Below are positions 3,391 through 54,230 of a stretch of 64,000 nucleotides of DNA, in pieces. Where the stretch lies: positions 14,446,001-14,510,000 of the forward strand of contig CM060731.1 of NCBI GenBank assembly GCA_030704615.1, read 5' to 3'. Under the pieces are notes generated by a model. It saw only the letters and a list, made by a program, of their open reading frames with translations. It was not told where the DNA came from and searched no databases. Each line of letters opens with the position of its first letter. Within the stretch, counting starts at the first letter, position 1. The translations under genes were made by a program, and so were the position numbers. This DNA comes from Takakia lepidozioides (lineage: Eukaryota; Plantae; Bryophyta).

Positions 3391-5020
3391 ATTCACAACG
3401 GCTCCAATACTGGTACATGCAGACCCATCTAAACCATTTTTTTTGGAAGCAGATGCATTGGACTTTGCACTTGGCGTGATACTCTCTCAATACGGTACAG
3501 ATGGCCGACTTCACCCTGTTGGTTTTCGTTCTCGCAAATTTTCCGCTGCGGAGATCAATTATGAAATCCATGACAAAGAACTTCTAGCGATTATTGATGT
3601 TTTTGAGGAGTGACGTCATTTATTGGAGGAAGCTAAACATCAGGTTACAGTCTATACCGATCACAAAAATCTCGAGTATTTTATGAGTGCTCGTGTTTTG
3701 AATCGACGTCAAGCGAGATGGAGTATGTCACTAGCAATGTTTGATTTTGTTATTACCTACAGTCCCAGACATCTTCAAGGAAAACCAGATGCTCTTTTTC
3801 GACGATCGTATCTTGCGCCAAAAGAAGGGGATGCAGCTTTTGACCAACATAAATCCATCATCTTGAAACCAACAAATCTCCAAGTGAATATGTTATCCAT
3901 GTCTACCTGTGACGATGTAGAGATCATAAAGAAGATCCAGGAAGCACTGAAGAGCGACCAATTTGCCACGACACTACGAAGTCAACTAAATCGACCTCGA
4001 GTCAACCCACATGTTACAAACGACTTCAAATACAAAGATGACACATTTCATTCCATGTAATAAGACGGTTACCGGCGAGGAAACTGCAAGACTCTTCCTC
4101 AATAATATCTACCGCATTCATGGACTCCCGAATGACATCGTATCTGATCGAGGACCACGGTTCATATCAAATTTCTGGAGGGGATTATTTCACATATTGG
4201 ATATTAAGATCAACCTCTCTACAACTAATCATCCACAGACTGATGGTCAAACCGAACGTGTAAACCAAATTTTGGAGCAGTATCTTCGCTGTACGATAAA
4301 TTATCACCAAGATAATTGGACGGACCTTTTGTCATTGGCTGAGTTTGCCTACAACAACACTATACATTCTTCGACCAAACAAACTTCATTTTTCTCCAAT
4401 TATGGTCATCATCCTCGAGCAAACCCTTTCCAAATGAAGACTGTTGGAATCCCTACTGTAGAAAACCTTGTTATTCATCTTGCTATGATTCACAAGGAGC
4501 TTACATTCTACCTCGTAGAAGCTCAAAAACAATACAAGGAGTATGCAGATCAACGTCGCCAACTCCAACCCCAGTTCAAGGTCGGAGATCGTGTGTGGCT
4601 TCTTCGACGGGACATACAAACCTCGCGACCATCAAGGAAGTTGGATTATCAACGCCTGAGACCATTCAAAATTATTCGACAAATAAATCCGGTCAGTTTT
4701 CGGCTTGAACTCCAACGAAGTATGTACATCCATCCAGTCTTTCATGTTTCATTATTGGAGTTGTATCATCCATGGAATATTCCAGGGAGAGTCTCTGTAC
4801 CACCTCCACCAATCGAAGTCAATCAGGAAATTGAGTATGAAGTCGACGAAGTCCTAGACTCTCGCATCAAGTATAAACGTCTTGAGTATTTCGTACATTG
4901 GAAAGGTTACGACATCAGCGAATAAACGTGGGAACCTTCATCCAACCTCGCCAATGCATTTGACAAAGTCCAAGAGTTTCATCAATGATATCCAGCTAAG
5001 CCCCGAGCTACACGTCAATA
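3391..5020 (+). pseudogene. Degenerate pol: RNase H, integrase (N-terminal part deleted) and chromodomain
   Basis: [55 protein letters not shown]; HGLPNDIVSDRGPRF..HPQTDGQTERVNQILEQYLR; HPVFHVSLL; EYEVDEVLDSR..LEYFVHWKGY..TWEP. Stops at ~3611, 4923 and ~4986. Confidence 0.93.
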
Positions 5021-17300: not shown

Positions 17301-18412
17301 GCACTTGGTAGCACCAGACCATACACATCTGCTAGCGCACCAGGAGGATCCTTGTTGGGTCAGGACGAAGACGCCAAAGCAAAAAGGCGCCACACCATGG
17401 CTGAGCGCACCAGGAGAGAAACACAAAATAAGTTATTCGTTGCTTTGCGACAGCTTGTGCCCTTGAGTTCTAAGGTACATGCTCTCTCTATACACTGCAA
17501 GAATGCTGGGTTCCTCTTGGCAAGCACTGTAACAAGTTCATCAAGGAGTCTGCATTTTGTGTGCTTCGATTGTGACCCAGATGTCAGCAATGTTACTCAA
17601 CAAAATGTGTGGCTGTGTACTCGTTAATGGCAGCAAGCTCTCTAGAGCCTTTGAATCTTTGATGTTGATTGTCACTGAACATGGATAAGCTGAGAGTTGA
17701 ACCACTTGGGATATTGATAAATATATCCTTGGGTTTAGTGACTTGCACAGCACAATTCATATAGTTAGGACTCCGTATCTTCCAGCTCCAATTCTTCCTC
17801 CTGTACAATGTGTTTACATTCTTGTACTCATTTCTTTCGTCATATTGATGCCACACTGCAGCGAGACAAGGCCTCGACTCTGCGCGATACAATAGAGTAT
17901 GTGCGACAACAGCACGAGTACATCGAAGAGCTTGAAGCTAAGGTGGCTGCTTTCTCTCAGCCACATTTTCAAAGACTCTGAAACCCAGACACACTCTCTC
18001 CCTTTTGTCATACATTGAATTCATTGCTTGGCATCGATATGGAGCTAGTATAGAATAGGGTACAAAACCATGGGTGTAAGAAGAACAGACTGGTTGGCTG
18101 TGGATTCCGAATTTGGATTCCATCGTTCCTCATGTGGATAGGTAAGGACAACAGATAGTGTGAAAAAAATTTATACAGAATAAAGCTTCAGCCCAACTAA
18201 TCGCCCAACTAATCGGCAATTCAGGCCAGGTTGGGTAGCAAGCTGAAGTTGAATGACATTCCAATTCTCTTCTGTGTTTCTTGTTGTCAGTTTCAACACA
18301 CTGTGTCAGTGTACCGCTGTACATATCTATGTACACCCTTTGCTGCAAATTGAGGGGCACTTTCCTCTGCTCGCAGACACCTCCAATCCAGAGAAATGCA
18401 CTGGAGATATAG
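14335..18412 (+). CDS. bHLH transcription factor with a bHLH-MYC_N-type N-terminus (bHLH041/subfamily IVd-like)
   Basis: Exons ~14335-14465, 14921-15043, 15517-15634, 16014-16073, 16277-16764, 17054-17474, 17861-17942, 18377-18412. N-terminal WSYAALW/LVWKDGWY/SFTPGFGLVG/TMLFIPMVGHGVLELGT; bHLH RRHTMAERTRRETQNKLFVALRQLVP|RDKASTLRDTIEYV with the H-E-R motif. Confidence 0.88.
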
Positions 18413-19282
18413 CACTAGAAGAATTGTGATTGAGGTAGACAGCCGGGCCTTGCATGCATGTAGTCCTTCACACGTCTAGGACATGTGTGCTTAGAAATGC
18501 ATGACAACTTCGCCTGTCTAAATCATCGATCATGTCTTCTTAATTGCTCAGACATCCAGCTACAGAGACATGCTCTTCCCACAGGCCTTGTTAGAAGTCC
18601 AAGGACAGCAAACAACCAGATGTTTGTTGTCTCCGCAGGTCTTGTGCAGATGTCTGACCAGTCTTGATGCAGCTAGTTACATTAAGTAGCATAAAGGTAA
18701 CTTTCCCATCAGTAAATGCACCTCTTTAAAATGAGTGTTGTCATTCAGGCATATAACTGCCTGCTCAGCTATATAGCTACTGGCAGTAAACATGTTCATG
18801 CCTCCAGTTCCTATTCAATGCAAGAATAATTTTATTGGCTACAAGTCCCCCTTAAGGAACCATGTATTACAAACGTCTCTTTGTACACACAAATAAAACC
18901 GATCAAATGCTGTCTCTCCAGTTCACATCCTATCTGCAATGATGGCTGGGTTCAAGTACCAAAACATTGAACAGGACATTCCATGACATGGCTATTGCGG
19001 CCTGCCATTCCTAGGACCAACTTTGCCATGAACAAATTCGATAGTATCCAACTTCAAGATTGTTAAGTGGAAGCTACAACAGCTGAATGAGATCAGTATA
19101 ATCAAGAGTTTTTAGCATCTATTGTGACAAGAACTAGCTAAAAGCTGATGTACAGAATAGACCTTTGAGAGAAATCCTGCGCGGGGAGGCCCAGCCCTTG
19201 TTAGTGCTTCCACTGCGAGCAACTACAGCTAGGGCCATCTTGTCAAAAAAAGTGGAAATCAATGATTCAATTGTGGTAAGCA

Positions 19283-22200
19283 TCACGAAAATAACTTTGT
19301 CAAAAGCTCTGAGGTGATTATGATGCCAGCTGTTCCCATGACAAGGCCCAGAGTGAGACGGCCACCAGGTACAATTGGTGCAACTGCAGGGGGAAGGCAA
19401 TTCTCTGTGTACCTTTCCGACCAGGCCATGGCTGCTGGTAGTATTCCAAACAAAATCAACACTGGCCATGAATACCACCCCCCACAGCATTAGTCATTCA
19501 AAGCAAGACATGTGTCATTACTTCACTTTACCACAAATCAGGTATATACTATGAGTGGACCCTCTCTATGACACAGAAACAGCCTGCTAAAGATCACTGC
19601 ATGTAAACATGGAAGAAAATGGTCAAGCTCATTACCACCATATGTGCCGGCGAAATCTAGAGCCTCATAGAAGATGGTGGGTGACAGCACGGCAAGAGGA
19701 AGTGGGGGTATCACAGTTAATGTGTATGGTAGCAGCTGCTGACCTCGGCCCCCCGGCAGCTTCAGCACTGCATGCACCCAGACCAGTCTCACACGACAGC
19801 TCATATCTTGTGCTAGAAGCTTCGTGACAGGAAGATTATTGATTGCAAACAGATGATGTTGAGATATCTTCAAAGGACAAGATCCTCCAATTCGGAATGA
19901 TCACTTGGGTTCTCCTCTTGATGCAATTGAGAGGTCTTTAGCTCCTTGTCCAAACTCAATGAGTACATCATGACCTTCTGAAAGGGGGCCCGAAAGACCA
20001 AAGCTCACGTGCTTTCGAATATATCAACTTCACCTTGAAGTCGAAGTCTACTCAACAGCAGATTGTTACGCGAAGTCAACCGTCGAGTCACAGTCATCTC
20101 AAACTGACTGAAGGATAATGGGTTCCTCAGACATGGATTTTCACCATGTACAAGCTGTTTCATGCTAAGGGACATGACAGGATCCAGCACTTGAGACGAA
20201 GGCATCGACAGAAGAGACTGTAAACTAGCAACACAAAAAAAAATTACCTCCACAGCAGCCTTACCCCTGGATATGCATTTTCCACCACCGACAAATACTT
20301 CCATGGCCAAGTTTGTAAACACTGAATGTTGAGGTCTGAAGTTGAGATGTACTTACAATCGGCAAGGAAATCAGACAGGCCCAACACAAAGCCAATATAG
20401 GAGGTGGCTACAGCCAGCAAGGAAAATAACTCCACTGTTGGCTGCACAACCATGACAGCTTGCTTATTAGAAAGCCCAAAATTTCTAGGTACCTGATTAG
20501 CACAAGCTCTGCAATCAGCCCAACTAGTTCCTTCTGCTTATAGGAGCATATGACACTGATGATTAGAACACATAAGCATCTGTCATCCAAGACACTTAAA
20601 AGAGACAATAGCCCCTATAGCATATTTAATGCGAGTCTTCAACTTACTCCGACGATACCACTAGCAGATCGCAACCGCAGCAGTGGGTCACTTATCATTT
20701 GGACTGCTCCATTTACATCCACCACCGAGGATATTGTGCCGAGAATGACCGCATCCCATAATAGAAACATGACCAGTGGAATTGCTGTTCCAAGTACCAC
20801 TGCAGTTCTGTCCATCATATTATATCAGCACCAAATAAACAAGGAGATGACGAGCTAGATCAACAGAAAAGAACTTGATGAGAGGGAAAAGGAAGCTCAT
20901 TACCATTTAAGTTTTCAAATAAGAATTTTGAGGACTCAGGTTTCATGAAGGAAGAAACGTCATAGCCTTCACAGGGCCATGTGACAAAGTAGAACACCAA
21001 AGAAGAAAGAGAGAAGACAACAACAGAAGTTTTCCATCTAAAAGAAAAAAAGAAAAACGATAAAGAACTCATGAACAGTTTAATGTGACCTTTGTATTGA
21101 CATCCTTTGGGGACATATAGTTCTCTCCAGATCTAGCCAATTGTATGAGACTCACCCTCAGATTACCCCAGCAGTTGCTTACAGCCACCAACAAGCCATT
21201 AGGAACTGGATCCAATCAATCAGCTAGTATTGGCATCATACAAGAAAGCATGCGCTTGATTTGAGCACTGCTCATCTAGGCCTCTAACTCGCAACACACG
21301 TACCTCTGGTGTGAGAGAATGGGCAAAACAGAAAAGGAGAAGAGGAAAAAGAACATAAGACGTTGTCTGCCAACAAAGATGGAGAGAGAGGACACCTGAT
21401 TCTAGGAAGATCTCCCTCGAGACTAGTCGAAACCACTGGGACAACATTCTGCATAATGCTCACAACATTCCATCACTCATCTTGCTCATGATGAAGAAGC
21501 TTTTGTGCTGTACGTGGCAGTATTAAGTCAAACATGAAAAGAATCCCAGCTAGGAAGTTATCAACTTGAACAGACTTGAATATCTCACAAGTATATCCCG
21601 TACATTTACACTAAATAAAATGATTGTGCTATAGGGTGTCTCAGTTTGCATATACAGCTGCTGATTCTACTTCCAAAAATTCTTAATCTTGAAGCCTTCT
21701 GTCCAAAGTTCTGATCTTCATGAGGTCAACCTCTCTGAGATCCAGGCATAAGAGAGGCAAAATGAGACACCATTTCCAACTAAGACGTGTCATACCTGGT
21801 AAACAAAAGCCAGAGCAATCACTGGAACACTGTGTGGTACAGCCGCAAAATTGGCACGCAGCAGTGCACTGAAATCCAACCCTCCTGAGGCCAATCCCTG
21901 TGACAAAGGTAGAACCCAAAGAGCCCCAGCCCTCAGTTTTAACTTGCCAGTCAGCCAACCCTCCAGAGGATAGAGGCCCACTCTAGGAAGGCAGCTTTTA
22001 TTCAGCCTGATTCACTACCTCCTTAAATTGCCTTTCCCGTGTCCCAGCATTAAGATTGTAGCTTACAGTATGCCTACAGCCCCCACCTCCCTTTCTCATC
22101 CTATTTTAGTCTGTGATGCAACCTGCCTGCCTGCTGCTAGTAGTAGCTCCTACTACCTCATATATGCATGGGCTCTGGATCCTGTCAGTGAAATACTTCT

Positions 22201-32304: not shown

Positions 32305-35014
32305 CTAATTCACGAGAACTCTTGCCGAGGACTTGGGGATTGGAGGGGGAGCAACAGAGATGGTGCCCTCTAGCATCTGGACTACTTGGCCCATCGACGG
32401 CCGAAGCGAGGCCTCATCCTGGATGCACCAAAATGCAATTTGGACTGTCCGGTCAACCTGATCAGTGTCCACTGCCCTGCCTTGCAGCCTCTCTTGCTGT
32501 TGAATCCAAACCACAAGGCCACCGTCCTGCATTTTGTGGTAAGCGTTCGCTACAAAGTTGTGCGTTTCAGATTCTGAGACTACAGGGTCAAGGGCCCTCC
32601 TCCCTAACACAATTTCCAGCAAAACCATGCCGAAGCTGAAGACATCTGTTTTGGCAGTCAGCGGCGCATTCCCCGCCCACTCAGGAGCCAGGTATCCCCT
32701 GGTCCCTCGAATTATGGAGACATTGCGTGCATGGCCCGGTAGACCTAAGAGCTTGGCCAATCCAAAGTCGGAGACCTTTGGAAAAAACCGGTCATCCAGC
32801 AATATGTTCTCTGGTTTGATGTCACAGTGGACTATGCAAATTCTGCACTCTTCATGGAGATATGTAATGCCCCTTGCGGTTCCAAGAGCAATCCCAAATC
32901 GAGTTTTCCAGTCAAGTTCTACCAGCTCATTACTAGATGTGCTGCTTCCCTGAAAGAGAAAATTGTCGAGTGAACCATTGCTCAAGTACTCGTACACAAG
33001 CAGCCGATGCAATCCTTCGGAACAGAATCCGTGTAGGCGCACCAGGTTCATGTGATGGGTGCTCCCAATGATGGCGACTTCTGTTCGAAACTGTCTCTCT
33101 CCTGCACATCAATCCATCCCCAGTGAGCTTGTCAGCTACAAGTGGAAGAGACAACACAGTTTCTCATCTCCTCTCTCCTCGTCCAAAGTCACGAACTCTT
33201 CTTTTCTTCTAGAGGCATAAGAGCTTCTACATTGGGGGAGTCATCATTGATCAATTTAAGCATGTCCTGGGGATTTTGCTCTTGAAAACTTTATGCTTAT
33301 CCTGGTGGGGACTACTTCAAGAGCTCAAGAAACATCTGGACACTGCCAAGCTAGTCATCTTTGATAACCAGTATTTTCAGTAACTCTCACCTTGCTCAAC
33401 CATGTCCTCCAGCTGCTTCACTGCCACGACCGTCTTGTCTGTCAGCACGCCCTTGTAGACGCTGCCAAATCCACCAGCGCCAAGCTTCTCACTGAAATTT
33501 CTAGTGGCCTGTTGCAACTCTTTAAAAGAGAACTTGATAGGGGCTCCTGGGACATACTCTTCCGAATTCGTGGTTGCGGACACGATCCGAAACTTGGGTT
33601 GGTGCTGGGAATAGTAGCACCACGCAAGAAGCGCAAGGAGCGATGCTGTAGAAGCAGCGAGAACTCCGATGACGATGCGTGAGGTAGAGTCTATGTGTGG
33701 GGAAGGGGCCACAGCTCCAACTGCTGTTGGCGAGGCGAGAGCTTGAGATTCACAAAGCTTGAGATAAGAGACACTCAGAACAGTTGGAGACTGGTAACCA
33801 CTGAGGTACTCAGTACGCTTCTCATAACAGTAGCCCGTCCCATCATTTTGAAAATTCGAAGCCATGCACGTACTGTCCAGGAAGCAGGTCTGATTGCAGT
33901 TGACGCTGTTTGCGTTGTTCTCAAGGAAGTCAGAGGTGGCTCCTAGGAGCATAGTGTTCTCCAAAGCAACCATCTTTATGCCAGCACTGCAGTTCAGGCG
34001 GAGTTGAAGCACACACCCTTGCGTGCTGTCTTTGGGATTGACAAGCTCATAACCTGGTAGGCAAGTGCATTGTGGCTGGGCTTGGGCATATACACACAGA
34101 CCGTTCTGCCCACAACGGCCATAGATTGTGCACTCATTGCTGATGGCCTGCCAGGTTGAGCTCCAATTTGATACAGACTCGTCCCAGCTGTAGGTCCGCA
34201 GATTCCCATCCGAGTCTATGGTTAGGCGCCTAACAGCGCTCTCCCCATAATCGCTACTAAACCATGATTCCACCACACCTGATGTATTTAGCAATTGAAA
34301 TGATCCTTCTGAGTTCAACTGTGCACTGCTTGGAATTGCAGTTGAGGGTCCCACAAATGTACCGCTCTGCCAGTAATTTGTGGTTGTGTTCCAGTACAAA
34401 GCCAGGTTGCCATCAGTGCCCAGAGATAGCCTGTAGCTGGACACTGGGGGGTTTGAAGATGCATCACCAGAGACAGTGAGAATGGAGCCCTGTAGCATTG
34501 TCTGCCCAGGTAAGAGAGTGTCGGAAGGGTAAGACCAACTCTCCCACACATAACCCCCGCTACTGTTAAGTAGAACGAAGTTCCCCGAGTCCAGAAGGGT
34601 GGCCCCGACTACCCCAACCTGGCTTGTCAGATTGCTGGACCAGACCTCAACTTGTGGAGAACCGGAGAGCAACGCGAGGTTACCATCCACGTTAAGCTCA
34701 AAAGTAGAGTTCGCTCCCACTGATATTGGATGCGATGCATTCAGTGTCCACACAACAGTTCGGAGAGGAAGCTGTGCGTACCAAATGCCAATTCTGTACG
34801 TGGAATTTCCCCCGTTGTGGACAGGATAGAACCCGAGTGCAAAGGTGCCATTAGGAGATGACTTCCAAGCTTGGTTCTGTCCAGGAACTAGGCTTGCACC
34901 CAGTTTGAGCTGGGTGTGATTGGTGGAGTCCAGAGCAGTTGCCTGCCTCCATTGCAACAGCGATACTGCACAAACTATCACCGTCACCACCACTTTCGTT
35001 CTCCAAACTGTCAT
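32305..35014 (-). CDS. G-type lectin S-domain receptor-like Ser/Thr kinase (SD-2 type)
   Basis: Exons 35014-33391 and 33101-32305. Signal peptide, B-lectin (SPNGTFALGF, LLDSGNFVL, WESWSYPSDTLLPGQ), S-locus/EGF (CTIYGRCGQNGLC), PAN-like region, TM helix, kinase (GAGGFGSVYKG, VAVK, HCDIKPENILLD, DFGLAKL, RGTRGYLAPEW). Confidence 0.95.
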
Positions 35015-39579: not shown

Positions 39580-41712
39580 CTAGGGTATCCTGTGTCGTTG
39601 GCCCAAGTGTCCAGTGTAATTTAAGTCCAAGTGCATATAGACCCTCCTGTTTTGGAGATCTAGGCCTAGGGTAGCATGTGCCATTGGCCCATGTGTTAAG
39701 AATCAAAATGTAAGCTCAAGTGCAATCCCCTATGTATCCAAATGCGTCTCCTATGTTAAGGCCCATGTGCGAAAAATTGAAATCTAAGCCCATGTGCAAT
39801 CTCCTATGTATCCAAGTGCTTCTCCCATATAGAGGCCCAAGTGTAATCCCCCGTGCATCAAGAGACCCTGCAGTTTGGGAGATCTCATTGTCATTGTTCC
39901 AACAATGCCCATTTTGCTATTTTTGTTGTCGAGGTTTTATATATTGAGATATTCACTTTGCTATTTTTCACGAATTTCCAGCGACCAAAAGTACTTGAAA
40001 TTCCAAATCTCCCACATGAAGGGCCAATCACTGCTCCAAGAAAGCCCATTTTGCTATTTTTCGCGAATTTCCGGCGACCCAAAGTACTTGAAATTCCACA
40101 TCTCCCACACCGCGGGTCCAAAAATTATGAGACCAACCTGGTGCACCCCTCCTCATCGAGGGCTTTCCAACGGCACCAAGCACTAGGGTTGGGCCCCGCC
40201 GTTTGGGAGATCTCAACGACGCTACAAAACAAAACAAACAAATAAACAAACATCTCGCTTCATATATTGACTAGGGTCGCCTATGCCGTTGGCCCAAGTG
40301 TCCAATGTCATCTAAAGTCATCTAAGTCTATTCATTTTTTTTTCCACAGAGCCTACGACCAGATTTGAACCGGAGACCTTTCCCTTGATATCTCGCATGT
40401 CGAGGCTCCAATCATTGTCCAGGGACCAAACATACCATTTCTCATTATTATTTTTCCACGGAGCCTACGACCAAATTTGAACCGGAGACCTTTCCCTTGA
40501 TATCTCTCCTGTCGAGGCTCCAACCATTGTCCCAAGAATGCCCACTTTGCTATTTTTCCCAAATTTTCGACAACCCAAAGTACTTGAAAGTCCACATGAT
40601 CTCCCACACCGCAGGTCCAAAAATCATGAGACCAAGCCCGTGCACCCCTCCTCCTCAAGGGCTTTCCAACGGTACCAAGCATCAGCGCTGGGGCCTTGTG
40701 GTTTGGGACATCTCAACGTGACAAAACAAACAAAACAATACAAACGTCTCAATTCATATGTTGACTAGGGTAGCATGTGTCGTTGGCCCAAGTGTCCAGG
40801 GTCATGTAAGCCCAAGTGCAATCTCCTATGCATTCAAGTGCGTCTCCTATGTCTAGGCCCAAGTATGACCTCTAGAGTAGCTTGTGTCGTTGGCCCAAGT
40901 ATCCAATGTCATCTAAGTCATTCAAGTCTAATCATTTTTTTCCACGGAATCTACAACCTGATTTGAACCGGAGACCTTTTCCTTGATATCTCTCCCGTCG
41001 AGGCTCCGATCGTTGTGCCAGGAATGCCCACTTTGTTATTTTTCCTGAATTTCCAGCGACCCAAAGTACTTGAAATTCCACATCTCCCACACCACAGGTC
41101 CAAAAATCATGAGACCAAGCCCGTGTACCCCTCCTCGTTGAGGGCTTTCCAACACTAGATGTCACCCCCCCCCCCCCCCCCCATCTGTCTCATCCTCCTT
41201 ATTGCTGGTCCACAACCCCCCAGGAGCCCTTTCACCAACATATTGATAAAATCAGACAACTTCACAAGTCGGACAAATCTACCACTCTCCTCTCTTCTCT
41301 AAATGACGAGCACCCTGGAGCTGCCCTAAGAATGCTAGCTTTTGAGTGTCATTTGTATCCAAGTGCAATCCCCTATGTATCCAAAGACCCCACTGTTTGG
41401 GAGATCTGGGATAGCATGTGTCGTTGGCCCATGTGTGAAGAATTGAGATCTAAGCCCAAGTGCAATTTCCTATGTATCCATGTGCCTCTCCCATGTAGAG
41501 GCCCAAGTGCGACCTCTAGTGTCCAATATCACCTAAGTCCAAGTGCAATCCCAAAGCCCACTTTGCTATTTTTTTGCAAATTTCCAACGACCAAAAGTAC
41601 TTGGAATTCCAAATCTCCCACGTGAAGGGCCAATCGTTGCTCTAGTGTAGCCTGTGTCGTGGGCCTAAGTGTCATCTAAGCCCAAGTGTAAGATCTTCTA
41701 TGTATCCCAGTG
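39580..41712. repeat. Mosaic satellite-like repeat, left part (target of the CACTA insertion)
   Basis: Many copies of ggcccaagtg / gtgcaatc(t/c)cctatgtatccaa, plus ~180-bp modules (cgacccaaagtacttgaaattccacatctcccacacc...gggctttccaacgg) at ~40075, 40570 and 41057. Confidence 0.85.
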
Positions 41713-41849
41713 CACTACAGGAAAAGGGGGGCCTTTGCGACGCCCGCGCCACACCACGGCCACGCCGCAGCGTCGGGAAAACGCCCTTTTCGGGCACGCG
41801 GTAGGCGCAAAATTTGCGACGCCCGGCCGTCGCCCTGCAAGCCATAATC

Positions 41850-43663
41850 ACATCATCCATAGACAGATCACTTGTGTCAGGATGAAAAAGTAGGGAATAT
41901 CATCCGTGGCAGCGCCTTACCTCCATCTAGGTAATTCTATCATTCCTCACCAAACCATCCGGTATGGATAAAAAGAGTCAATAAAAGAGGAATGAAAAAT
42001 TATCATCCTGGTAGTTTTTCATCCGGTACGGATGGAAAAACATGATGTTGTTGGCAACCTTCATAGAGGTAATTCTTTTCTTCCATGGTGACTCATCCGG
42101 TATGGATGAGAGTCAATAAAGGAGGAATGAAAAGGCCAAAAGAACCATCCTAGAGGTAATTCAATGTCCAACCTGGTGGCTCATCCGGTATGGATGAAAA
42201 AGCCTGATAGAGGATGAGAAAACAAGAAGTCAACACTGATAGCAAACTGCCAATTCCCAGTAGAGAGGGAGAGAGAGGGAGAGAGGGGGCAACAATGAAA
42301 AAAAATGGGTTGGGGGGGGGGGGAGGTCAGATGGTGGGGTCAGCTGCAGCATATGTCCAACACCAGATATCCTAAGTTAATCGACTCTATATCTTGGAAA
42401 CGGGACCGCCCACCGATCTGTCAAACAGGCTAAGTCCTGGCAGAAGACAGTAGAAGAGATTCTCAAGGACCTGGACCTGGAACCGCAAGTCTTTACCCTG
42501 CTGGATAAATCTGACTTAGAGGCTGTAGTGTCCAACCATGTCTGTTGCCATGAGATTGTCTGATGAAAATGAAGTTAGGCAAAAAACATCCCTGAACTTG
42601 TTTCCAGTCAGTGACATGGGGGAGGACATCTTGGATGACCTCAAGGGTCTACCCACTCTCGACACTAGACTGAAATTTAAACTCAGGGCAGGAAGCCTAC
42701 CTTTGAACAGCAAACAAAAGCAGAGAGGAAAGGGAGAGTGCAATTGCCCGTTGTGTGGGCAATCTGAAGACAATACTCATTTTCTGATACATTGTCCGGG
42801 GTTCTCTCACCAAAGAGACGCTCTTTTCAAATCTATCAAGGGAATTGTGCATGTACCTCTGTTTACTAACTTTGAAAAAGTCGAGGCTGAGCCAAAAGCC
42901 CAGCCCCTTCTGAGGCCTAGTTTTTGGGCATCTCACACACAGAAGATTGATGCTTGTGTGAAGGGATTTGTAGAGGAAATCTGGAAAACCCGGATTAATT
43001 CTATATATGAAGGTAAGTCTTACTACCAACGTTAGCCCCTGATAGAGGTAGGATCTGTCCCTTTTGTTTCCCCAAGAGAGGGGGCAACAAAGAAAAACAG
43101 AGAATGTGTGGGGGGGGGGAGTGACTGAGCAGCAGCAGCTGCTCAGTCACTCCCCCCCCCCCCCACCTTCTTTTCTTCTCTTTGTTGCCCCCTGATGTCT
43201 CCCTCTCTCTCCCTCTCTCTCCCTCTGGAAACTGGGTTTATGGAATTGTCATCCCGACTTCCATCTTTGAGAAAATTGAAAAAATTGAAAAATTGGGTTG
43301 CAGGGAATTTTGGATGTTTTTTCATCCAAAATACAAATCTTTCCCTAGTGAAACATTTCTTCACTAAATACCTGTGAGGTGCAAAACTCCCGTCAGTCAA
43401 TCCAACCTGGATGAAAAAAAGACTTCATCTGACAAGACCTAAATACGGGGCAAGACGGGTATAAACCCCCGATGTTTTTCATCTAACCTAGATGAAATAC
43501 AGACTGCATCCGTGGAGTTCAAGACGGGATAAATGCACGATGTCTTTCATCTTCCGCAAATGAGAAACGGACAACGTCCATCGGGCGTACAGGCTGGCGG
43601 ATGTTTTTCATCCTGGGAAGGATGAATGACAGGCCAGATAGGGGAAAACCTTGCTCAACCCTA
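41850..43663. mobile_element. Nested insertion in the left CACTA arm: DNA-transposon-like remnant with CATCC-N5-GGATG palindromic repeats
   Basis: Repeated tcatccggtatggatga-type motifs at 41.85-42.22 kb and 43.30-43.63 kb. Ends gctcaacccta (reverse complement TAGGGTTGAGC, hAT-like). No partner TIR seen. Confidence 0.45.
42351..43075 (+). mobile_element. 3' fragment of a non-LTR retrotransposon with a C-terminal CCHC finger (RTE-X/L2-like)
   Basis: MSNTRYPKL..SWQKTVEEILKDL, then RLKFKLRAGSLPLN..CPLCGQSEDNTHFLIHCPGFSHQRDALF..FVEEIWKTR, ending at the stop at 43035. Confidence 0.7.
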
Positions 43664-45093
43664 ATGTCTTTCGTTTTGCGCTGCAAGAGCGCGCGCGATG
43701 GCAGCTTGGGAGGAGCAATGGTGCTCGTGCTGCAGATACCTTGAGCTGCCAATCCTTGAGTGTTTATGGCTCCTGTGAGCGCCGCCTAGGCGGGCTCTTT
43801 AAGGCGATGGCGGTGGCTTAGAGATGAGGGAAGATTCATTGTCTCAATTGTCTATTTTTTTGCTGCACAAGGGAACCACGGCAGTGATGGCGGAGGTACC
43901 ACCTGCATGCTTATGACGTTTCCCTAGGAGCCCTCCTCTGGATCTTTGATGAATGGCAACGTCTTGGTAGAAAAATGAAGTCTCTCTCCCTCCCTTTATA
44001 AACCCTACCTTTTGAGACCAAGCTCTTTTTTCTTGTGCTTGGCAAGACTTTGCTTTGGTTAAGGTAGCAGTGTTGTGGTGCTGGCGGAGTCCTCCCTGCA
44101 CGGTTAGGCTTGTGGAGAGATGACGACTCTCCCCCAAACAGTAAAAAAGGTTCTTTTTTTCTGTTTAATTTGCTTCCCTGCTTTCTTTGGCATTCTATGC
44201 GCTTAGATTGAAATGTATTTGACCTCGATAGCAAGTGTGGAAGCCTACTACTCACCTCGTGCATCCTCACTAACTCACAACGCGTTATGGTTGTTTTTGG
44301 GACGGGCATAGGTGAGGGCTTCCACTTAATATTCTGATGTCTAGGTGCTGCTGGATGCCAAGTGGGATTGCAGAGCCGAGGAAGGAATTGCTTGCCAGGG
44401 ACTCATCTTAAAATGCTGAAAAACTAAACTACTCTATGGTTTTTCTTGATCCTACCTCTTTCATTCCTTGATTTTTCAAGAACAAGTGTAATGTAAAAAT
44501 GAAGATTGTGACGGCTGACCGTCATTTCTTGCGACCCCTGGCCCCATAAATAAAAAAACACGTCGCCCCGTGCGACGGCTGTCCGTCGCGGGGTGCGACC
44601 CCCAGGTAAAGAATATAAAAAAAATCGTCGTCCAATGCGACGCCAGGGTGTCGCAGGAGGCAACGGCCGGCCTTTCTAGATTCAGGGTTTAGGGCCTTTT
44701 GGGTTTCTTAGTTTTTTTTTTTTTTTTTTTTTTTTTTCCCATATGGTACTGGGTTAGGGTGTTTGCTTTTCTTTATGGTGCTGGGTTTTGGATTGGCGGT
44801 TTTGGTTGTGGGTCTTGGGGTTAAAAGGATAAACGGTGTAATTAGGATTCACATACCCAAAATGTGGTTCAATCTGATAATCGCAAAGCGCTGGGTCTCA
44901 ACAAATTTTTCCATAGTGTGAGCATCCTGAAGATAGAACGAGAGGAAGGATTTATTGTCTTGGGCTCTAGAACCATAGGTATGCTCCGCCTTTGGTTATC
45001 AATTTTGAAAGCCCCGAGGCTGAGGCATAGGGTTTTTTTGCCAACGGTTTTTGAGAAATGAAAGTGTTGGTGGTGTGTGTTAATTGGGATGGG

Positions 45094-48000
45094 ATGGTGA
45101 GGAAACATTGACCCGTCTCCCTCGAGGATGGGGAGGTAGTACCACATATCGATTGTGGCCCTAGAGCGACCATTTTTCATGGCGAGGAGGCACCCATTGC
45201 ACCTGATCCAATACAGGCTGCCGGGCACAATCGTAAAAGGGACCGGGGCCAAATTTCAGGTGATGCGGAGGATGTTGACACTCCGGGATCGAGTCGGGCG
45301 CGCCGCGGGTTGCCCCTCGCGGGCCACCCCGTCCAACCACATCCATCTTTGACCCCCCGACAGGATTGAGTGTTAGTGCACTAAGTGTTGGGAATGGATA
45401 CCGCCGGGCGGCACCAGACCACCGAGGCGGCGACCGCATGTTGTCGAAAAACATTACAAGAAGAACAAGATTGCGGATGCGGCAACGGTGAATGTTCTTC
45501 CCACCCCTCTCATTAACATTCATTTAAGGTACATTTAGGTTTATCTAATAATATAGTATGATTGGTAAGTATACATGAATCAAAATTACGACATAAGTAT
45601 TGATGCGTCGTTCACTACGCACATTGCAGCCACGACTTGATGCCCAAGCTCGCAATCACATTGCACATGAGGCATTTCGCGCCGGTCTACTTGCAGAATT
45701 TGTGCCAGAGCATGTGCCCGATGTGACCAGTTGGTTCCCCCAGCAGCACGTAGATGAGATGCGTAGGGTCGAGGGGTATCATAGGTGTCGTAGGCGTTAT
45801 GGTCGGCGACGAGTAAGCCCACCCCCCCCTCCAGTTTCCTCAGGCGCCCCCCCTGATTGTGGCCTCCCCCCCCCCCCGTCTGTTTCTTTGCCTAATCCAC
45901 CTCCGGTTGTATCTGATCCGGACGTTGTACCCCCGGCTGCACCTCCGACATTACATCCTCAACCACCTCCACTTTCATCTCCTCTGCCTACAGTACCACC
46001 TCCACCACCACCTCCACCTCCACCTCCACGTGCATGTGCCCCCCAAACCCCTAGGAGGGGTTGGCTACGCCCTAGGTTTCCTCCCCTTCGGCTTGGGCGG
46101 CCTGAGCCGGATTCTCGTCCCCGATGGGAAGCGCATATTACTATGTTATTGAGGACCGTCCAGCCTCGTTGTTGGGGGAATCATCTCGACCCTCCCACCC
46201 CCATCCGAGAAAATGTGGAGTTCGAGTATTGGGGGAGACGGTATGTTATGAGAACCGCTACAGACCTTGGTTTATTCACGGTCAATGATATTGTGGTTCC
46301 TCCTCGGAGAAACAACATGGTGGACTTGTTTCCCTACTACGGTCCATACTACACCTCCGCGGAGTTCCGTACATTACGCCTCGAAGCCCCATACATCCTA
46401 CCCTACATTTTGTGTGTCAACGGACAGGATGTACGTAGACGGGGGTTGTCTCCCATTGAGATCAGATTTTTTGATGGTGACCCCAGCATCTTCGGCAATG
46501 TTGCTGGGCTGGTCAATAGTTCTTTTGGTCATCCTAGGAGAACCAATGTAGTATGGGACGAGCGAAGCGATGGGCATGAGAGCTTTTGTGGTCATACGTC
46601 AGTATACTGTGAGGGGATGCACATGTTTGTGATGACATGTGCTAGTAGGACTATTAGGGCTGGCAGCGAACTATTTGCATCATACAAGTTCTCCCGGGAT
46701 GATTGGGACCTCCAATTACAGCGTGAGTGGGATGTGTATGATAGAAATAGGGTTCTTTTGAGACAAGGATTGCGTAGAGGGGCATTGTAGATATTCTCAT
46801 GATGTACTTTGTATTCATCCGATTAATCGATTGGTGTAAATTTTCTCTTGCTGCTCGTGTGGGTTGCAACTTTGCATATGTGATCTAAACATACTTATGC
46901 ACATGTGGACCAAATATGAGCTTGAACCAAGTTGATTCAATGGGTCATTCTAGTGTTGAATGCAGCTACGTGTCATAGAGACGGAAAATTGTGTTTCGCC
47001 TGCAGATGATTTTTTTTTTAATTCCATTTTCAAGCCATATGCTTAATGATAGCATATGCAATGTGCGTGCAAAACTTGGGAGTAAACAAAAGTCATTTGG
47101 ACCCATAACCAGATTTTGTTCTCTCATTTATACTCCAAAGTTCAACTTCATGCACTCTTTATAGAGAGTTCTGCAAAAGTGACCCTAGAAACACACTTTT
47201 TTTTTTCCATTTTTTTTTTGGTCCCATTTTTTGCATGGATGTAGTGGTGCAAAGCCCGATGTCACAGAACAAATAGAGCTAAAAATAAAATCATTACGCC
47301 CCTCAAAACCGCATATATTTTCTAAATGCAAATATTTATTTTAAATTCATTTAAATTCGATTTAATTCAAAATTGGTGCAAGGGTGAGTGCGTCGTTGGG
47401 GAGGCAATTTTTTTTTTTTTCCTGCTGGATCTTTGTACAGGTGTTGCACACATATTTAAGCACATGTAGGAAAAAATGAAGCTTGAGCCACATCCGTTTG
47501 TTGGGTGCAATGGCATGAGAGGATTTTCTTTCACATTAATAAACAAAAATTGGTTGATAGGGTGAATGCGTCATGGGGGGGGGCAAATGATTTTGTTTGG
47601 GTTTGAAACTTTGCATGCGTGTACGTTGCGCATATACATGTAATTATTGAATGACATATTTGATGCACACACACATTGAAGGTTGTTGTTTGCATTTCGC
47701 TTATAATGAAGTGTATGGTTGCAATGACACATTATAATATATGTCTCTATGTTCATTTGTTCGTATCAGGACTTTGTCCATCCCTTCCCGGTCTTTTCTC
47801 TTGGCATCCCATCCGAAAACAACCCAAGTACATCAGGCGGGAGCCGTGGGCGAGACGCCGCCCCCACGGTACCGGACGATGATGACGATGACAGTGATAG
47901 TGATAATGACAACAACAATGAGCATGGAATTAACCAGGAGGATGTGCAAACCATGGAGGATCTCTTAATGCATCATGTGGGCGCTGATGCATCCCATGAA

Positions 48001-51000
48001 GAGGGAACCCGACCAATCGATGATCCTGAAATGGCCCCCTCAAATGACATGGAGAGGGAGGCGAGAACTCCCTTGTACGAAGGGGCGAAAGTGAGTCGAC
48101 TTTCAACAATCTTACTTTTGCTCAATCTTTAAATTCGATTTGGCATAAGTAATGTTGGGATGTCTGCCATAATGCGAACTATTGCAGACTATATCCTTGC
48201 TCCACACTTGAAACCCAAGATGCCATGCTCGCGGAAAGAGGCGCGCGAAGTCTTGGACTCTGTGGGGATGGGCTATAAGATTTTTCATGCATGTCCATGT
48301 GATAAAACCTTATACTACGGAGAGGATTCGCATCTCACCAAGTGCCCAAAGTGCAAGAAAAACCGATATCGGGATGATGTCCAAGGGAAAAAAGTACCAC
48401 GCAAGGTATAAGCGTCATTCTCCCTCGCATGGAGATTATTTTCTTTAATCTTCTCAATGTATGTAAAGTGTATTCCACAAAGTTTAGGGTTTAGAGAGTA
48501 GTACTCATGCAAGATCTGATTGTGGTTTTGGAAGGAGTGAGTGAGGAGTGGAAAGAACGACGTTTGGTTTTGACCATTCACACCCAAATGAGGGAGAGGC
48601 TGCATAAAGGGAAAGACATAAGGGTGTTGTATTATGTGTGCTAATGGGATGATTACATGTGGGGGGCGTGGGGTATTTTATCCTAGAAAATGCATTACTT
48701 TCCGATCATCCCGCGATTGAGGGCGCAGTACCGAAGCCCCGAATTGGCCAGACTCATGAGATGACACGCCTCGCATCGGAGCCCCCCGGGAAAGGTGTGC
48801 GGGCCACAAGATTCACAAGCATGGAGGCATATTGAAGAGATATGGTCTTTTCTCTTGGAGGACCCACGACATGTCCACCTCGGCTTCTCCTCAGATGGGG
48901 TCAACCCATTCTCTGTCCAGTCATGTAGTCATTCCACTTGGCCGGTGACCATGGTGAATTACAACATCCCTCCGTATCTTCAATTAAAAAAGGCCATATC
49001 ATGTTGGCTGCCATTGTGCCAGGTGAGTGTACTCATTTCATGTTTATTATTGCTTTCAACTTTATATTAAACTTCTGATCTCTGACGCAATTCGGATGCA
49101 AGATTGATGAGTGACATAATCATGGAGTAAGACGTGTAATTCATTTTGTAGTATAATTTGCATATTGGTGAAGCATTGAAACAATGATGTGAATGTCTCA
49201 TAGGGAAAAAACAAGTGACAAACATGGACACGTACTTGCGACCTCTTGTTGATGAACTTAAAGAGCTATGGAGGGGGGCCCCGGCATTGGATGCTTCACT
49301 TGACCCTATGGCCGGACAATCTTTTCAGATGAGAGACATCTTGCTTTGGACAATGCATGATTATCCAGGTATATTATGTTCCCCATGAACAACCCGCGTA
49401 CATTCACTTGTCAATGTCGGATAATATCGATGAGGATTGGGATTGATTGAAGTAGCGGCGACAGTCTTGTGCACCGTAGTGGGGTAGATGGCATTATGGG
49501 CCATGCACATGACAACTTTTGTTTTTGCTAATGTGGCGGGATGTGTTGTACAAGACTAACTGTTTGCTCGGGGCTAAGCACCAAAGGGTACCATGCATGC
49601 TTGCATTGTGGCGATGATCTTGATGCACATAGCTCCCGCCATCTTCACAAGATGATGTATCCCAACTACCGCAAATTTCTTCCTATGAGCCATCGATGGA
49701 GAAGAAGAGAGAAACACTTGTTTGATGGCAAAGAGGAAGTACCCCCCCCCCCCCCCTATGACACCGTCCGGGCAGTTTTGGGAGGACCGATGGAAGGAGG
49801 CCCATGCGGGCACGGACGGTGAAGTGGACGTGCCCGACATGAAACGATTTTCAATCTTCTACGAGTTGCCATATTGGGCAGTACATATTCCACAAAAACA
49901 CTGTCAATATCCCTATGCATGCATGTGATATTGCACATTTGGTATGCGTTGCATTGTCACTTTCACGTAAAAGAATTTGTGTAAGTCTTTGTGGGTGGGG
50001 ATATATGTAGGACCTGAAGATTCGCCATCTTCTAGATCCCATGCATATTGAGAAGAATGTCTGTCGAGCTCAACGGAACGAGGGGGTGTCCAAGGGACAA
50101 ATTGCTGATTCCCCGGGGTAGCGCCTGCTGCGGGGTCGCATGCGCCATCTATGGGCCGAACAAAATGGTGTGGACCCAAAGGGTGTTGTACGGTGGAAGT
50201 ATAGAAGCGCACCTTGGCAATGGACAAAGGAGGAATACAAGAAAGTGATAGCCATCATAAGTGCTGTCCGAACACCAACTGGTTATGGGTCATCCCTCCG
50301 TACGAAGTTCAGCGAAGAAGATGGGGTCCATGGTTTGAAGTTTCATGACTACCACAATCTATTGCAAGACATCTTGCCCATTGCAGTACGTGGGACATTG
50401 ATTCCCGAGGTTCGTGAGACAATCTATAGATTGGGAGGCTTGTTCTGGTGGATTTGCTCCAAAGAGTTGGAAGAAGTAGATTTTCCACGTATGAAGAAGG
50501 AGGCGGCGGAGGTAATGTGTATGTTGGAGATGCACCTTCCTCCCTCCTTCTTTGACATCCAAGTGCACTTGGTAGTGCACTTAGTGGAAGAGGCTTCGAT
50601 TGCCAGCCCCATTCATTCTCGGTGGATGTACTTCCTTGAGCGTTATATGAAGACTTTGAAAGGATTTGTAAGACAAATGACGCACCATGTAGCATGGTGG
50701 AGGGGTATACGTTGCAAGAAGCTATGTTCTATTGCACGGAGTACATGACAAAGGTGGATGAGGAAGCCCCTCGGACGTGGAAGGAAGAGGAGGATGCACG
50801 AACCAATGACATCGTTTTGCCCAAAAAATCGAAGAGGGTAAAATTGCCGACCTTGGTGATTGAGCAAACGCATGACTTCATACTGAAGAACACCCCATCC
50901 ATACATGAGTGGGAGAAAGATACAATAATCTAGTTCAACAACGAGAGGAGGAGACGTTTGCATGGAGGCGGAACCATCCAAGGCCGGTTACTAGACGCCC

Positions 51001-51952
51001 ACGACGAGGAGCGGGCCGCCGGCATGTTCCTTCACAAAATTTGCCCATGGAATTGCCGCCTATAAGTTCATTCCAACAGTGGTTTCGGACTTCAGTTTAT
51101 GACGCCGTTGCTCAAGGAGAGGTGATTTCAGATTCGGTGCAAGACATTGCAAGGGGCCCATCTCAATTCGCGACCTCATACACGGCGGTTTGGATTCACG
51201 GTCGTCATTTCCACATTCATGCTCTTGATATGAAGCGTAAAACAACCTTTGATTCTGGCTTGTGTGCCACATATTGGCAAGACTCTGTGTGGAGCAAGGG
51301 AGATACACGACCTGCTATGAGCAAACATGAGTACATTGGAGAGCTTGAGAGCATACTCCAACTTCAGTATACAAGGTACCGGCCTCTTCTCTTCAAGGGA
51401 AGGTGGTTTCAGCCACATCTTGTGGGGCCCTCCGCAACACTAGTGCAAGATGATTGTGGTTTCATGCGCGTCAATGCAGATAGACTCAACCCTACTCATC
51501 GTCCCTCCGATGAGCCTTTTTCACGGCCTTCAGACATGGAGCAAGTTTTCTTTTCCGATGACAAAACAAGAGGGGGGAATTGGAAGGTGGATGTGCATGC
51601 TCAGCCAAGAGGAAGACGTATCTATCATGGTCTCGGATCTCCATGGGGTGAGGCAATTGCGGTGGATGGAGAAATTGGTCATAATGATGCTGATGATGGA
51701 GGTTGGGTAGAGAGGGTAGAAGAGGATGATGACGCCCCAGACAATGCATCCTGGACCCTATATGATGAAGCTCTAGAAGATACGGATGTTGGGGAGGGAG
51801 ACGAAGACACGGCCATTGACAACGAGGTGGAGAATGATTCGGAGGTGCCTTTTGAGGGTCGGGCCATTTATGACGATGACACCGATGACCAAGAAGACTT
51901 GCAGCTTGATGAGGATGAAGAGGCGCCGGATGATGATGTTCAAGTTGATTAG
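45094..51952 (+). pseudogene. CACTA transposase (TnpD/Tnp2 type: transposase-associated Zn motif, Transposase_21, DUF4218, DUF4216), decayed
   Basis: Exon 1 ~45094-45487 (EC*CTKC..VEKH); 47770-48405 (ARTPLYEG, HACPCDKTLY, CPKC); ~48686-49022 (YFPIIPRL, LGFSSDGVNPF, STWPV); 49204-49368 (MDTYLRPLVDELKELW, WTMHDYP); then GYHACLHC, SIFYELPYW, LDPMHIEKNV, GLKFHDYH, PPSFFDIQVHLVVHL, RWMYFLERYM, LFKGRWF, DEPF..MEQVFF and an acidic tail. Several stops and frameshifts. Confidence 0.92.
45603..46790 (+). CDS. Intact SET-domain protein (putative lysine methyltransferase) with a basic N-terminus and Pro-rich linker, inside the CACTA
   Basis: Uninterrupted 395-aa ORF. SET motifs in canonical order: DLGLFTVNDI (~46263), YYGPYY, FFDGDPSIFGNVAGLVNSS (~46494-46523; NHS changed to NSS), ASRTIRAGSELFASY (~46641-46685; terminal Tyr kept). 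No post-SET Cys cluster. Confidence 0.8.
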   Translation: MRRSLRTLQPRLDAQARNHIAHEAFRAGLLAEFVPEHVPDVTSWFPQQHVDEMRRVEGYHRCRRRYGRRRVSPPPPPVSSGAPPDCGLPPPPSVSLPNPPPVVSDPDVVPPAAPPTLHPQPPPLSSPLPTVPPPPPPPPPPPRACAPQTPRRGWLRPRFPPLRLGRPEPDSRPRWEAHITMLLRTVQPRCWGNHLDPPTPIRENVEFEYWGRRYVMRTATDLGLFTVNDIVVPPRRNNMVDLFPYYGPYYTSAEFRTLRLEAPYILPYILCVNGQDVRRRGLSPIEIRFFDGDPSIFGNVAGLVNSSFGHPRRTNVVWDERSDGHESFCGHTSVYCEGMHMFVMTCASRTIRAGSELFASYKFSRDDWDLQLQREWDVYDRNRVLLRQGLRRGAL

Positions 51953-52194
51953 ACACAAAATCAAAGCTACATAACAATTCTCACACCGAACTGGACCCAT
52001 CCCTTCGATTGATTGTACATGTACATCCATATTGTACTTTATTTCTATGATTCATCAAATATGGCTGTGGCTGGTAGTTTTTCAAGAAAGAAGGCAGAAG
52101 CAATGAATATGTTGGAGCAACATATACAGATGTGGTATCAAGAGAATTATCAAAATGAATGTCACAATCTACAAGAAGGTCCACAACAACAAGC

Positions 52195-52896
52195 TAAACC
52201 ATAAAGAAAAACAAACACCCTACCCCAGTACCATATGAAAAAAAAAAAAAAAAAAAACTAAGAACCCCTAAATGCCCTAAACCTAAACCTAGAAAGCCCT
52301 GCCGCCGCTGCCTGCGACCCCCACGCGTCGCAAACGGCGACGACCAACCGTCGCTATCTGCGACCTGTTTTTTTGAATGGATTTATGAGGCCGGGGGTCG
52401 CACACGGCGACGGCCAGCCGTCGCAAACTGTGACCCATTTTTTTTTTTTTGCAAGAATAGGGTAGCCGGGCAGTTTGCGACGCCCGGCCGTCGCAGGGGC
52501 CTTTTGCCCTTCATGCCACCATGCGACGGCCTGGCATCGCAAGAAAGGGCTGCGATGAAAGAAATGGCAAGAAAGGGTTTTTTTTTTTTTTTTTTTTCCT
52601 TTTTCCGGCGTGCGACGAGCGGCCGTCGCCAGAAAGGGCTGCCTTCTGCCCTTCGCTGGGGGCGACGTTTGGGCGTCGCACGGAAGGGCTGCCATTTGCC
52701 CTTCATCACTCTGTGCAACGGCCAGGCGTCGCCGCCTGGCCCCGGCGCTAGGTGGCGACCCGCGGGGTTTGGCTGCGACGGCCCGACGTTGCAAACACGC
52801 TCCGCGGGGTTGGTGTCGCACGCTCGGCGCCACGCGGGGCGTGGGGGTGCGGCTGGCGTCGCAACCCCCCCCCCCCCCCCCCCATTTGTTGTAGTG
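52195..52896. repeat. Right long inverted terminal region of the CACTA
   Basis: 52195-52345 (ccataaagaaaaacaaacaccctaccccagtaccatatg-polyA-ctaagaacccctaaatgccctaaacc...gcgac) is the reverse complement of ~44625-44780. TGCGAC/GTCGCA repeats continue to the TIR. Confidence 0.85.
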
Positions 52897-52899
52897 GTG

Positions 52900-54230
52900 C
52901 GTCTATGTCGAGGCCCAAGTGTGACCTCTAGGGTAGCCTGTACCCTTGGCCCATATGTGAAGAATTTAGATCTAAGACCAAGTGCAATTTCCTATGTATC
53001 CCAATGCGTCTCCTACATCGTCGAGGCCCATCTAAGCCCAAGTGAAATCTTCTATTCATGTATCCAAGTGTATCTCCCATGTAAAGGCCCAAGTGTCTAG
53101 TAGTGTCATCTAAACCCAAGTGCAATCTCCTATGTAGCCAAATACGTCTCCGATGTCAAGGCCGATTTATTTTTTCCCATGAGTTATTGAGTATTAATAT
53201 ATCATTATTGATATATCTCCCGTCAAGGCTCCAATCATTGGGTAGCCTATGCCGTTGGCCCAAGTGTCCAATGTCATCTAAGTCCAAGTGCATCAATATA
53301 TGAAGCAAGCCATATCTAATCATTTTTTTTCCACAAAGCCTACGACCAGATTTGAACCGGAGGCCTTTCCCTTTATATCTCTCCTGTCGAGGCTCCAACC
53401 ATTGTCCCATGAATTTCCACTTTGCTATTTTTCGGGAATTTCCAGCGACCCAAAGTACTTGAAATTCCACATCTCCCACACCGTAGGTCCAAAAATCATG
53501 AGACCAAGCCCGTGCACCCCTCCTCGTCGAGGGCTTTCCAATGGTACCAAGCACCAGGGCTGGGGCCTCGAGGTTTTGCACATCTCAGCGTGACAAAACA
53601 AACAAACATCTCGTTTCATATATTGACTAGGGTAGCCTATGCCGTTGGCCCAAGTATCCAGTGTCATTTAAGTGCAATCCTCTATGTATCCAAATGAGTC
53701 TCATGTGTCGAGGCCCATGTGTGAAGAATTGAAATATGAGGCCAAGTGCAATTTCCTATGTATCCAAGTGCGTCTCCTATGTTAAGGCCCATCTAAGCCT
53801 AAGTGCAATCTCCTATGTATCCAAATACTTCTCCCACATAGAGGCCCAAGTGCGACCTCCAGTGTCCAGTGACATCTAAGTCCAAGTGCAATCCCATATG
53901 TATCCAGAGACCCTCCTGTTTGGGAGATCTAGGCCTAGGGTAGCATGTGCCGTTGGCCCAAGTGTCCACTGTCATCTAAGTCCAAGTGCAATCCCCTATA
54001 TATCCAAAGACCCTCATGTTTGGGAGATCTAGGCCTGGGTAGCCTATGCCAATGGCCCATGTGTGAAGAATTGAAATTTAAGCCCAAGTGCAATCTCCCA
54101 TGTATCCATGCGCCACGTCTCCATGTAGAGGCCCAAGTGCGACCTCCAGTGTTCAATGTCATCTAAGTCCATGTGCAATCGCCTATGCATCTTGAGACCT
54201 TGCACTTTGGGAGATCTCCACGTCATTGTT
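52900..54230. repeat. Mosaic satellite-like repeat, right part
   Basis: Same ggcccaagtg/gtgcaatc motifs and the ~180-bp module (~53445-53620) as in 39580-41712. Confidence 0.85.

Follow-up and report, generated by a model that had tools for sequence, protein, structure and literature searches.

A stretch of 64,000 nucleotides (nt) from the bryophyte Takakia lepidozioides (contig CM060731.1, positions 14,446,001 to 14,510,000 of the forward strand; the whole stretch is called the window here, and all positions are counted within it) contains an 11.2-kb CACTA transposon at 41713-52896. The element encloses an open reading frame (ORF) at 45600-46790 on the plus strand, which opens at a TTG and, in the ORF listing, yields a 395-aa product from an ATG at 45603; downstream of it, on the same strand, lie transposase domains collinear with those of a related transposase. 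We consider it probable that this element is one member, now partly degraded, of a CACTA (En/Spm-type) lineage of land plants in which a divergent SET exon is housed in intron 1 of the transposase gene.

The left end of the element (CACTACAGGAAAAGG, from 41713) and its right end (CACTACAACAAATGG on the minus strand, up to 52896; also quoted as CACTACAAC) agreed in inverted orientation at 16 of 19 positions. The two terminal inverted repeats occupy 41713-41731 (plus strand, starting CACTACAGG) and 52878-52896 (minus strand), and a GTG target-site duplication (TSD) flanks them at 41710-41712 and 52897-52899. The neighbouring paralogous repeat unit aligned without interruption across the reconstituted empty site, which confirmed both borders and the GTG duplication, as claimed in an earlier interpretation made from the letters alone (hereafter, the sequence-only reading). 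This unit emerged by alignment; an exact-pattern search found no second empty site in the window. The target of the insertion was a local array of ~230-bp repeat units of the GGCCCAAGTG.GACCTCTAG type (41410-41712 and 52900-52990).

TGCGAC/GTCGCA hexamers were concentrated near both ends: 20 of the 22 copies in the element fell within the subterminal arms, compared to a background of 0.3 per kb outside. The right arm (52290-52877) carries 13 of these motifs. The left arm consists of an outer part with the same motifs (41713-41850) and an inner part (44500-44665) inverted relative to 52290-52451, the two being divided by a foreign insertion of ~2.65 kb (41851-44499, approximate borders). Having the termini, the 3-bp TSD, a TnpD-type transposase and the subterminal repeat arrays, the element is a member of the CACTA/En-Spm superfamily. 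The insertion that splits the left arm has features of its own, namely short direct repeats of the TCATCCGGTATGGATG type, long G-run/C-run inverted repeats (42264-42323 versus 43153-43226), and a 165-aa ORF (42538-43035) with a Cys/His knuckle (CxxC..HxxxC) resembling that of long interspersed nuclear elements, for which no Pfam match was found.

Profile and structure comparisons indicated that the ORF in the element holds a genuine SET domain. Within the SET exon (45630-46790, plus strand; 386 codons plus TAG), a proline-rich linker precedes the SET domain proper, at ORF residues ~205-362 (46215-46688). All strings quoted in the sequence-only reading were present in the ORF, including the basic patch, the proline-rich stretch, DLGLFT..DI, YYGPYY, GNVAGLVNSS and RTIRAGSELFASY. 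The Pfam SET model (PF00856) matched this copy below its cut-off (E 0.15, 12.9 bits versus a gathering threshold of 22.4), while 28 of the 38 aligned family members matched it at E<=0.01 (best 6.5e-9) and the ORF of the Riccia locus L001 scored 25 bits. An exhaustive HMMER search with residues 169-395 recovered 60 relatives at 28-45% identity, the best with E 8e-19 at 41% identity; a single-domain word-indexed homologue search returned no relatives. The profile built from the family aligned with Legionella LegAS4 across the whole domain (E 3e-4). In a separate phmmer search against the PDB, the sole match was a chance match in the proline-rich part and was discarded. Exact look-up of the ORF across public assemblies gave no hit, and tblastn of the ORF against the window revealed no second copy.

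Structure prediction led to the same fold. AlphaFold supplied with the 38-row alignment produced a model with a predicted local distance difference test score (pLDDT) of 83.8 and a predicted template-modelling score (pTM) of 0.78, compared to a pLDDT of 30 from the single sequence. Foldseek against the PDB returned 167 matches at E<=1e-3 (best 5.8e-6), and the top 50 of these were all SET-domain lysine methyltransferases, e.g. SETD8, SET7/9, MLL, ATXR5 and LegAS4. VIA-align superimposed 124 residues with Z 12.3 and a root-mean-square deviation of 2.5 Å, with a tie among Set1, SETD8, ASH1L, MLL, EZH2, LegAS4, SUVH6 and PRDM5, so that no subfamily stood out. In the ESM Atlas, the top cluster by shape was a Streptophyta SET cluster (TM 0.64), and 24 of 30 matches by language-model features were SET clusters. 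The SET fold proposed from the letters alone was thus borne out in both profile and structure searches, by the LegAS4 alignment, the Foldseek match and the VIA-align superposition.

Most catalytic-site motifs were retained across the 38 aligned members, on which all conservation percentages given here are based. The glycines of the GxG motif, which binds S-adenosylmethionine (SAM), read G-L-G in the family (95% and 97%) and D-L-G in this copy (G221D). The tyrosine of PY.GP.Y and the asparagine at the PN-type position were each present in 100% of members, the GN.AG motif was conserved, and the ELxxxY motif (SELFASY in this copy) retained E356 in 100% and Y361 in 97%. The position corresponding to NHS(C) reads N-S-S in this copy and family-wide, S306 being found in 97% of members, and there is no Cys-rich post-SET region, most members ending ~10 residues past the ELxxxY tyrosine. 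Both peculiarities had been noticed in this copy before; the alignment showed that they belong to the family as a whole.

The same two peculiarities bear on whether the family protein is an enzyme at all. It could instead have a SET fold without catalytic activity and serve as a binding protein, sitting on histone tails or on the partners of host methyltransferases as a decoy or adaptor, as might be expected from a missing NHS histidine in nearly all members, a truncated C terminus and, in this copy, a Pfam score under threshold. The N-S-S sequence is by itself insufficient as a sign of inactivity: LegAS4, an active histone methyltransferase, has NFS at this position, and the viral vSET is a minimal SET protein that has no post-SET region, yet is active. 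Moreover, the glycines, tyrosines, asparagine and glutamate listed above were kept in 95-100% of members despite ~30% identity. We therefore regard a dead binder as unlikely, while leaving it some weight.

The reading frame of the SET protein probably does not begin at the ATG at 45603, as had been assumed. A remnant of an upstream exon (exon 1; 45094-45487, plus strand, start uncertain) is open piecewise and ends at a phase-0 GT donor, its frame closing at 45487 just before GTGAAT. It contains a cysteine motif at 45371-45388 (plus strand) that corresponds to the CxCxxC of homologues, with a TAG in place of the x of CxC in this copy. The SET frame begins in phase 0 at 45630, and the 142 nt in between (45488-45629, plus strand), which include the ATG at 45603, most likely constitute a GT..AG intron. 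Contigs of two public runs from the same organism (X1 and X2) joined the Cys-motif exon to the SET exon, connecting 45485 to 45628. The sequence of the observed join departed from the GT-AG prediction (45487/45630) at one base, a C>A difference at 45486, and the canonical 142-nt intron therefore accounts for the contig join.

Homologues pointed in the same direction. An intron of the same position and phase was found in the Riccia locus L004 (annotated model, 135 nt) and in the metagenome locus L005 (GT..AG, 130 nt), and in homologous proteins a CxCxxC..H motif lies N-terminal to the linker and SET domain in one polypeptide. In a scan of six loci, CxCxxC occurred once each in this element, L002, L004 and L005, always upstream of the SET exon, and was found in neither L001 nor L003. 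In the Riccia subfamily formed by L001, L003 and L006, the Cys motif reads HC..C. A short in-frame intron considered for L003 was rejected, since L001 preserves this stretch at the protein level.

The splice evidence came from Logan contigs of uncertain library type, and the RNA nature of the runs was guessed. Contigs of X1 also skipped two GT..AG introns of the transposase gene (48404-48684 and ~48953-49202, plus strand), which suggests that X1 is RNA; no run recorded as RNA carries this stretch. If the joins were DNA deletion variants instead, the SET ORF could be a gene in its own right, with 45603 as its start and no part in common with the transposase. This would fit the open frame from that ATG in this copy, the absence of an RNA label on the runs, the presence of an unspliced contig as well (X1 record 2) and the ATG 7 codons upstream of the transposase acceptor. 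However, the skipped stretch has GT..AG ends and its removal joins both exons in phase, introns (annotated or readable) occupy the equal place and phase in L004 and L005, the homologues combine Cys motif and SET domain in a single polypeptide, and further GT..AG introns were skipped in the same run. An independent gene appears decidedly improbable on this evidence, and we retain the spliced arrangement, with exon 1 leading into the SET exon.

Two further observations were made at these splice sites and exons. In-frame ATGs precede both acceptors, at 45603 (9 codons before 45630) and at 47749 (7 codons before 47770), and intron-retaining transcripts could thus give a SET protein or a transposase that lacks exon 1; this may be coincidence. 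In addition, a 76-bp piece of the SET exon (46178-46253), just before the conserved WGRR, appeared in X1 and X2 contigs with unrelated flanks, loose ends and a depth of ~39, and may be a family fragment embedded elsewhere.

The transposase gene follows the SET exon on the plus strand. The remainder of its putative first intron (46791-47769), placed without read support, ends in TATCAG, and the TnpD-type exons extend from 47770 to 51952. They encode Transposase_21 (PF02992) in pieces at 48765-49819 (E 1.5e-21, 2.1e-12 and 1.7e-13), DUF4218 (PF13960) at 50140-50748 (E 6.6e-23) and a DUF4216 match (PF13952) at 50909-51952 that fell below its cut-off (6.4e-5). Transposase exon 2 begins with DFVHP at a phase-0 acceptor (47769/47770); in L005, NQFVQP stands behind the corresponding acceptor. 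This second exon fits the exon 1 donor in frame, as does the SET exon. From these reading frames we infer that one first exon with two alternative acceptors is the most economical model. Exon 1 with its CxCxxC..H motif would be spliced alternatively to the SET exon at 45630 or to transposase exon 2 at 47770, both in phase 0, and a single promoter would give two proteins, a zinc-linker-SET protein and a transposase, with a common N-terminal module. Among the X1 and X2 contigs, none joined exon 1 to transposase exon 2.

The SET gene of this copy had been described as intact. The SET ORF itself is uninterrupted, but the upstream Cys-motif exon is broken. Exon 1 contains a TGA at 45109-45111, five codons after the candidate start at 45094, and a TAG at 45374-45376 inside the Cys motif, which is in frame when joined to the SET exon; no ATG occurs between this TAG and the donor. 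Sister contigs in X1 and X2 carry one extra C after 45312 and another after 45352, and the open frame of exon 1 jumps at exactly these two places. This coincidence indicates either two single-C frameshifts in the window copy or homopolymer assembly errors. Within the SET domain, a 95%-conserved glycine of the GxG motif is replaced by aspartate (G221D) and a 92%-conserved serine by alanine. Because of the stops and frameshifts in exon 1, the G221D replacement and the split left arm, this copy probably makes no functional SET protein. We view it as a family member that was inactivated recently, its long SET exon having so far escaped a stop.

The association of SET gene and transposase was not confined to this genome. 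Among eight loci that encode relatives with sufficient flanks to be read (26-35% protein identity to this copy), seven had the SET gene and a CACTA transposase in the same orientation, with the SET gene immediately upstream; this adjacency was one that the sequence-only reading had suggested looking for. These were the Riccia sorocarpa loci L001, L003, L004, L007 and L008, the JGI metagenome contig L005 and the ENA contig L009; the eighth, L006 of Riccia sorocarpa, had no annotated transposase. A profile search added members in Ceratopteris richardii, Adiantum nelumboides and the Ginkgo model Gb_21150, and one Adiantum gene model combined the Cys motif, part of the SET domain and DUF4218. On the strength of these sequence comparisons, the SET gene is a long-standing component of a CACTA lineage, the SET-then-transposase order being kept in a liverwort, in fern-like contigs and in this genome. 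Near the L001 pair, at a distance of 5 kb and on the opposite strand, a 1165-aa ORF with RING and Ulp1-protease domains (16473-19973 of that locus) could be another gene carried by a transposon.

All nine SET exons compared were open. Constraint was indicated between old subfamilies, where the proportion of nonsynonymous differences (pN, 0.29-0.54) was well below that of synonymous differences (pS, 0.63-0.85, mostly saturated). Young paralogue pairs gave near-neutral ratios of nonsynonymous to synonymous substitution (dN/dS) of 0.81 and 0.56, the pattern anticipated when copies degenerate once inserted. These near-neutral pairs, together with the decay of this copy (G221D and the broken exon 1), would also suit a one-off event in which the element picked up part of an ordinary host SET gene, neutrally evolving since, in the manner of Pack-CACTA elements. 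Such a capture is rejected because of the linkage across species and the low pN relative to pS: the same arrangement recurs in seven of the eight loci of other organisms at 26-35% identity, and pN lies far under pS between subfamilies. Furthermore, no canonical plant SET class is evident as a donor. We regard a one-off capture as extremely improbable, and an old SET exon residing in a CACTA lineage remains our preferred interpretation.

Several observations weigh against this interpretation. With the RNA nature of X1 and X2 guessed, the contig joins could be DNA deletion variants, and they support the connection of exon 1 to the SET exon, with none leading from exon 1 to transposase exon 2. 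The intron is not universal, as a single uninterrupted exon encodes both Cys motif and SET domain in the Riccia subfamily L001/L003/L006. The similarity of exon 1 to a known transposase-associated domain is weak: the exon-1 peptides of two homologues reached E 0.045 and 0.1 against Pfam Transpos_assoc, at its CxC..C..H region, and the 37-aa exon-1 piece of this copy had no Pfam match. The young paralogue pairs evolve near neutrality. Finally, catalysis is not assured in a family in which the NHS histidine and the post-SET region are both missing.

In intact sister copies, the SET protein would presumably bind SAM and methylate lysine in a nuclear protein, be it a histone or not. The N-terminal module shared with the transposase may steer this protein either to the TGCGAC repeats in the subterminal arms or to the transposition complex, and the element would profit from this. 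The mark might act in anti-silencing, in the choice of target or in the regulation of the transposase. Extended further, the shared zinc module would recognise the element's own TGCGAC repeats and thereby deliver a lysine methyltransferase to the element ends or the transposition complex, where the resulting mark could keep the family expressed or mobile, a mechanism that liverworts, ferns and further land plants without flowers would have in common by conservation. We put this extended proposal forward tentatively and hold it with low confidence.

To our knowledge, few transposons encode epigenetic enzymes of their own, and VANC of the VANDAL elements is the sole case with a demonstrated mechanism. 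In bryophytes and ferns, transposons are silenced by both H3K9 and H3K27 methylation. A SET gene kept in plant CACTAs across deep land-plant divergences offers a tractable case of possible manipulation of lysine methylation by a transposon, and its putative expression from the transposase's own first exon adds to the interest. There is also a consequence for annotation, as proteins of this family are filed as ordinary 'SET domain-containing' host genes, e.g. in Riccia and Ceratopteris.

Two other features were recognised in the window. At 32305-35014 on the minus strand, two long ORFs encode a host-type G-type lectin S-receptor-like kinase (B_lectin, S_locus_glycop and Pkinase domains). An ORF at 4011-4925 combines a chromodomain with an integrase SH3 domain of the Tf2 type and resembles the 3' portion of a Ty3 retrotransposon of the chromovirus type.

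Transposons that carry SET genes have been described before. In the red-algal Plavaka elements of the EnSpm/CACTA superfamily, the accessory gene PAG2 is SET cargo that consists of an N6-adenine DNA methylase domain fused to SET and sits in a three-gene cassette with a ParB/2OG-oxygenase gene, and its authors suggest that it helps to alter the chromatin of the very element that carries it (bioRxiv 10.1101/2025.02.11.637652). Likened by description, Plavaka and the present family are both DNA transposons of the CACTA superfamily with long-term SET cargo. They differ in architecture: here the protein consists of a Cys motif, a Pro-rich linker and a SET domain and is nested within intron 1 of a Transposase_21 gene of the plant type, and Pfam found SET alone, and no DNA methylase domain, in the ORF and its relatives. 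HarbingerS and Phytophthora MuDR families are also listed as encoding SET proteins (Kojima and Jurka 2014, Repbase Reports, cited in PMC12730594). As far as the citing text goes, these resemble the present case in being autonomous DNA transposons whose accessory gene is SET histone-methyltransferase-like, and differ in superfamily (PIF/Harbinger and Mutator) and hosts, no shared-exon layout being described there. Helitrons are further published carriers of SET genes. The earlier impression that SET is unfamiliar as standard CACTA cargo thus has to yield to Plavaka for the superfamily, and held for land plants: our literature search, which did not extend to Repbase Reports, found no description of a SET gene in a land-plant Transposase_21 CACTA or of the nested shared-exon layout.

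Other resemblances concern single aspects of the system. The Legionella effectors LegAS4/RomA (PDB 5czy and 8sr6) provided the best sequence-profile match among solved structures (E 3e-4), with structural Z of 11.4-11.6 at ~19-20% identity and NFS in place of NHS; they differ as secreted bacterial proteins with ankyrin repeats and no transposon context. VANC of the VANDAL Mutator elements is a candidate functional analogy, by idea only, as a factor that acts on the epigenetic state of its element; it lacks a SET fold and belongs to another superfamily. In primate SETMAR, a SET domain and a mariner transposase are joined by splicing at one locus, as might occur here. The direction of capture is different, SETMAR being a host gene that captured a dead transposase, whereas here a mobile element holds the SET exon within its terminal repeats.

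The closest parallel in gene organisation is maize En/Spm, which produces TnpA and TnpD by alternative splicing of one transcript, with the TnpD ORFs located in the first intron of tnpA, and whose short subterminal repeats are protein-binding sites. The Takakia element would share with it one promoter, a first exon common to two spliced products and, as a CACTA, the subterminal repeats. The nesting differs: in the Takakia lineage it is the TnpD-type gene whose first intron would house the accessory SET exon, the transposase is not followed by a TnpA-like gene, and the accessory protein is an enzyme-like SET domain.

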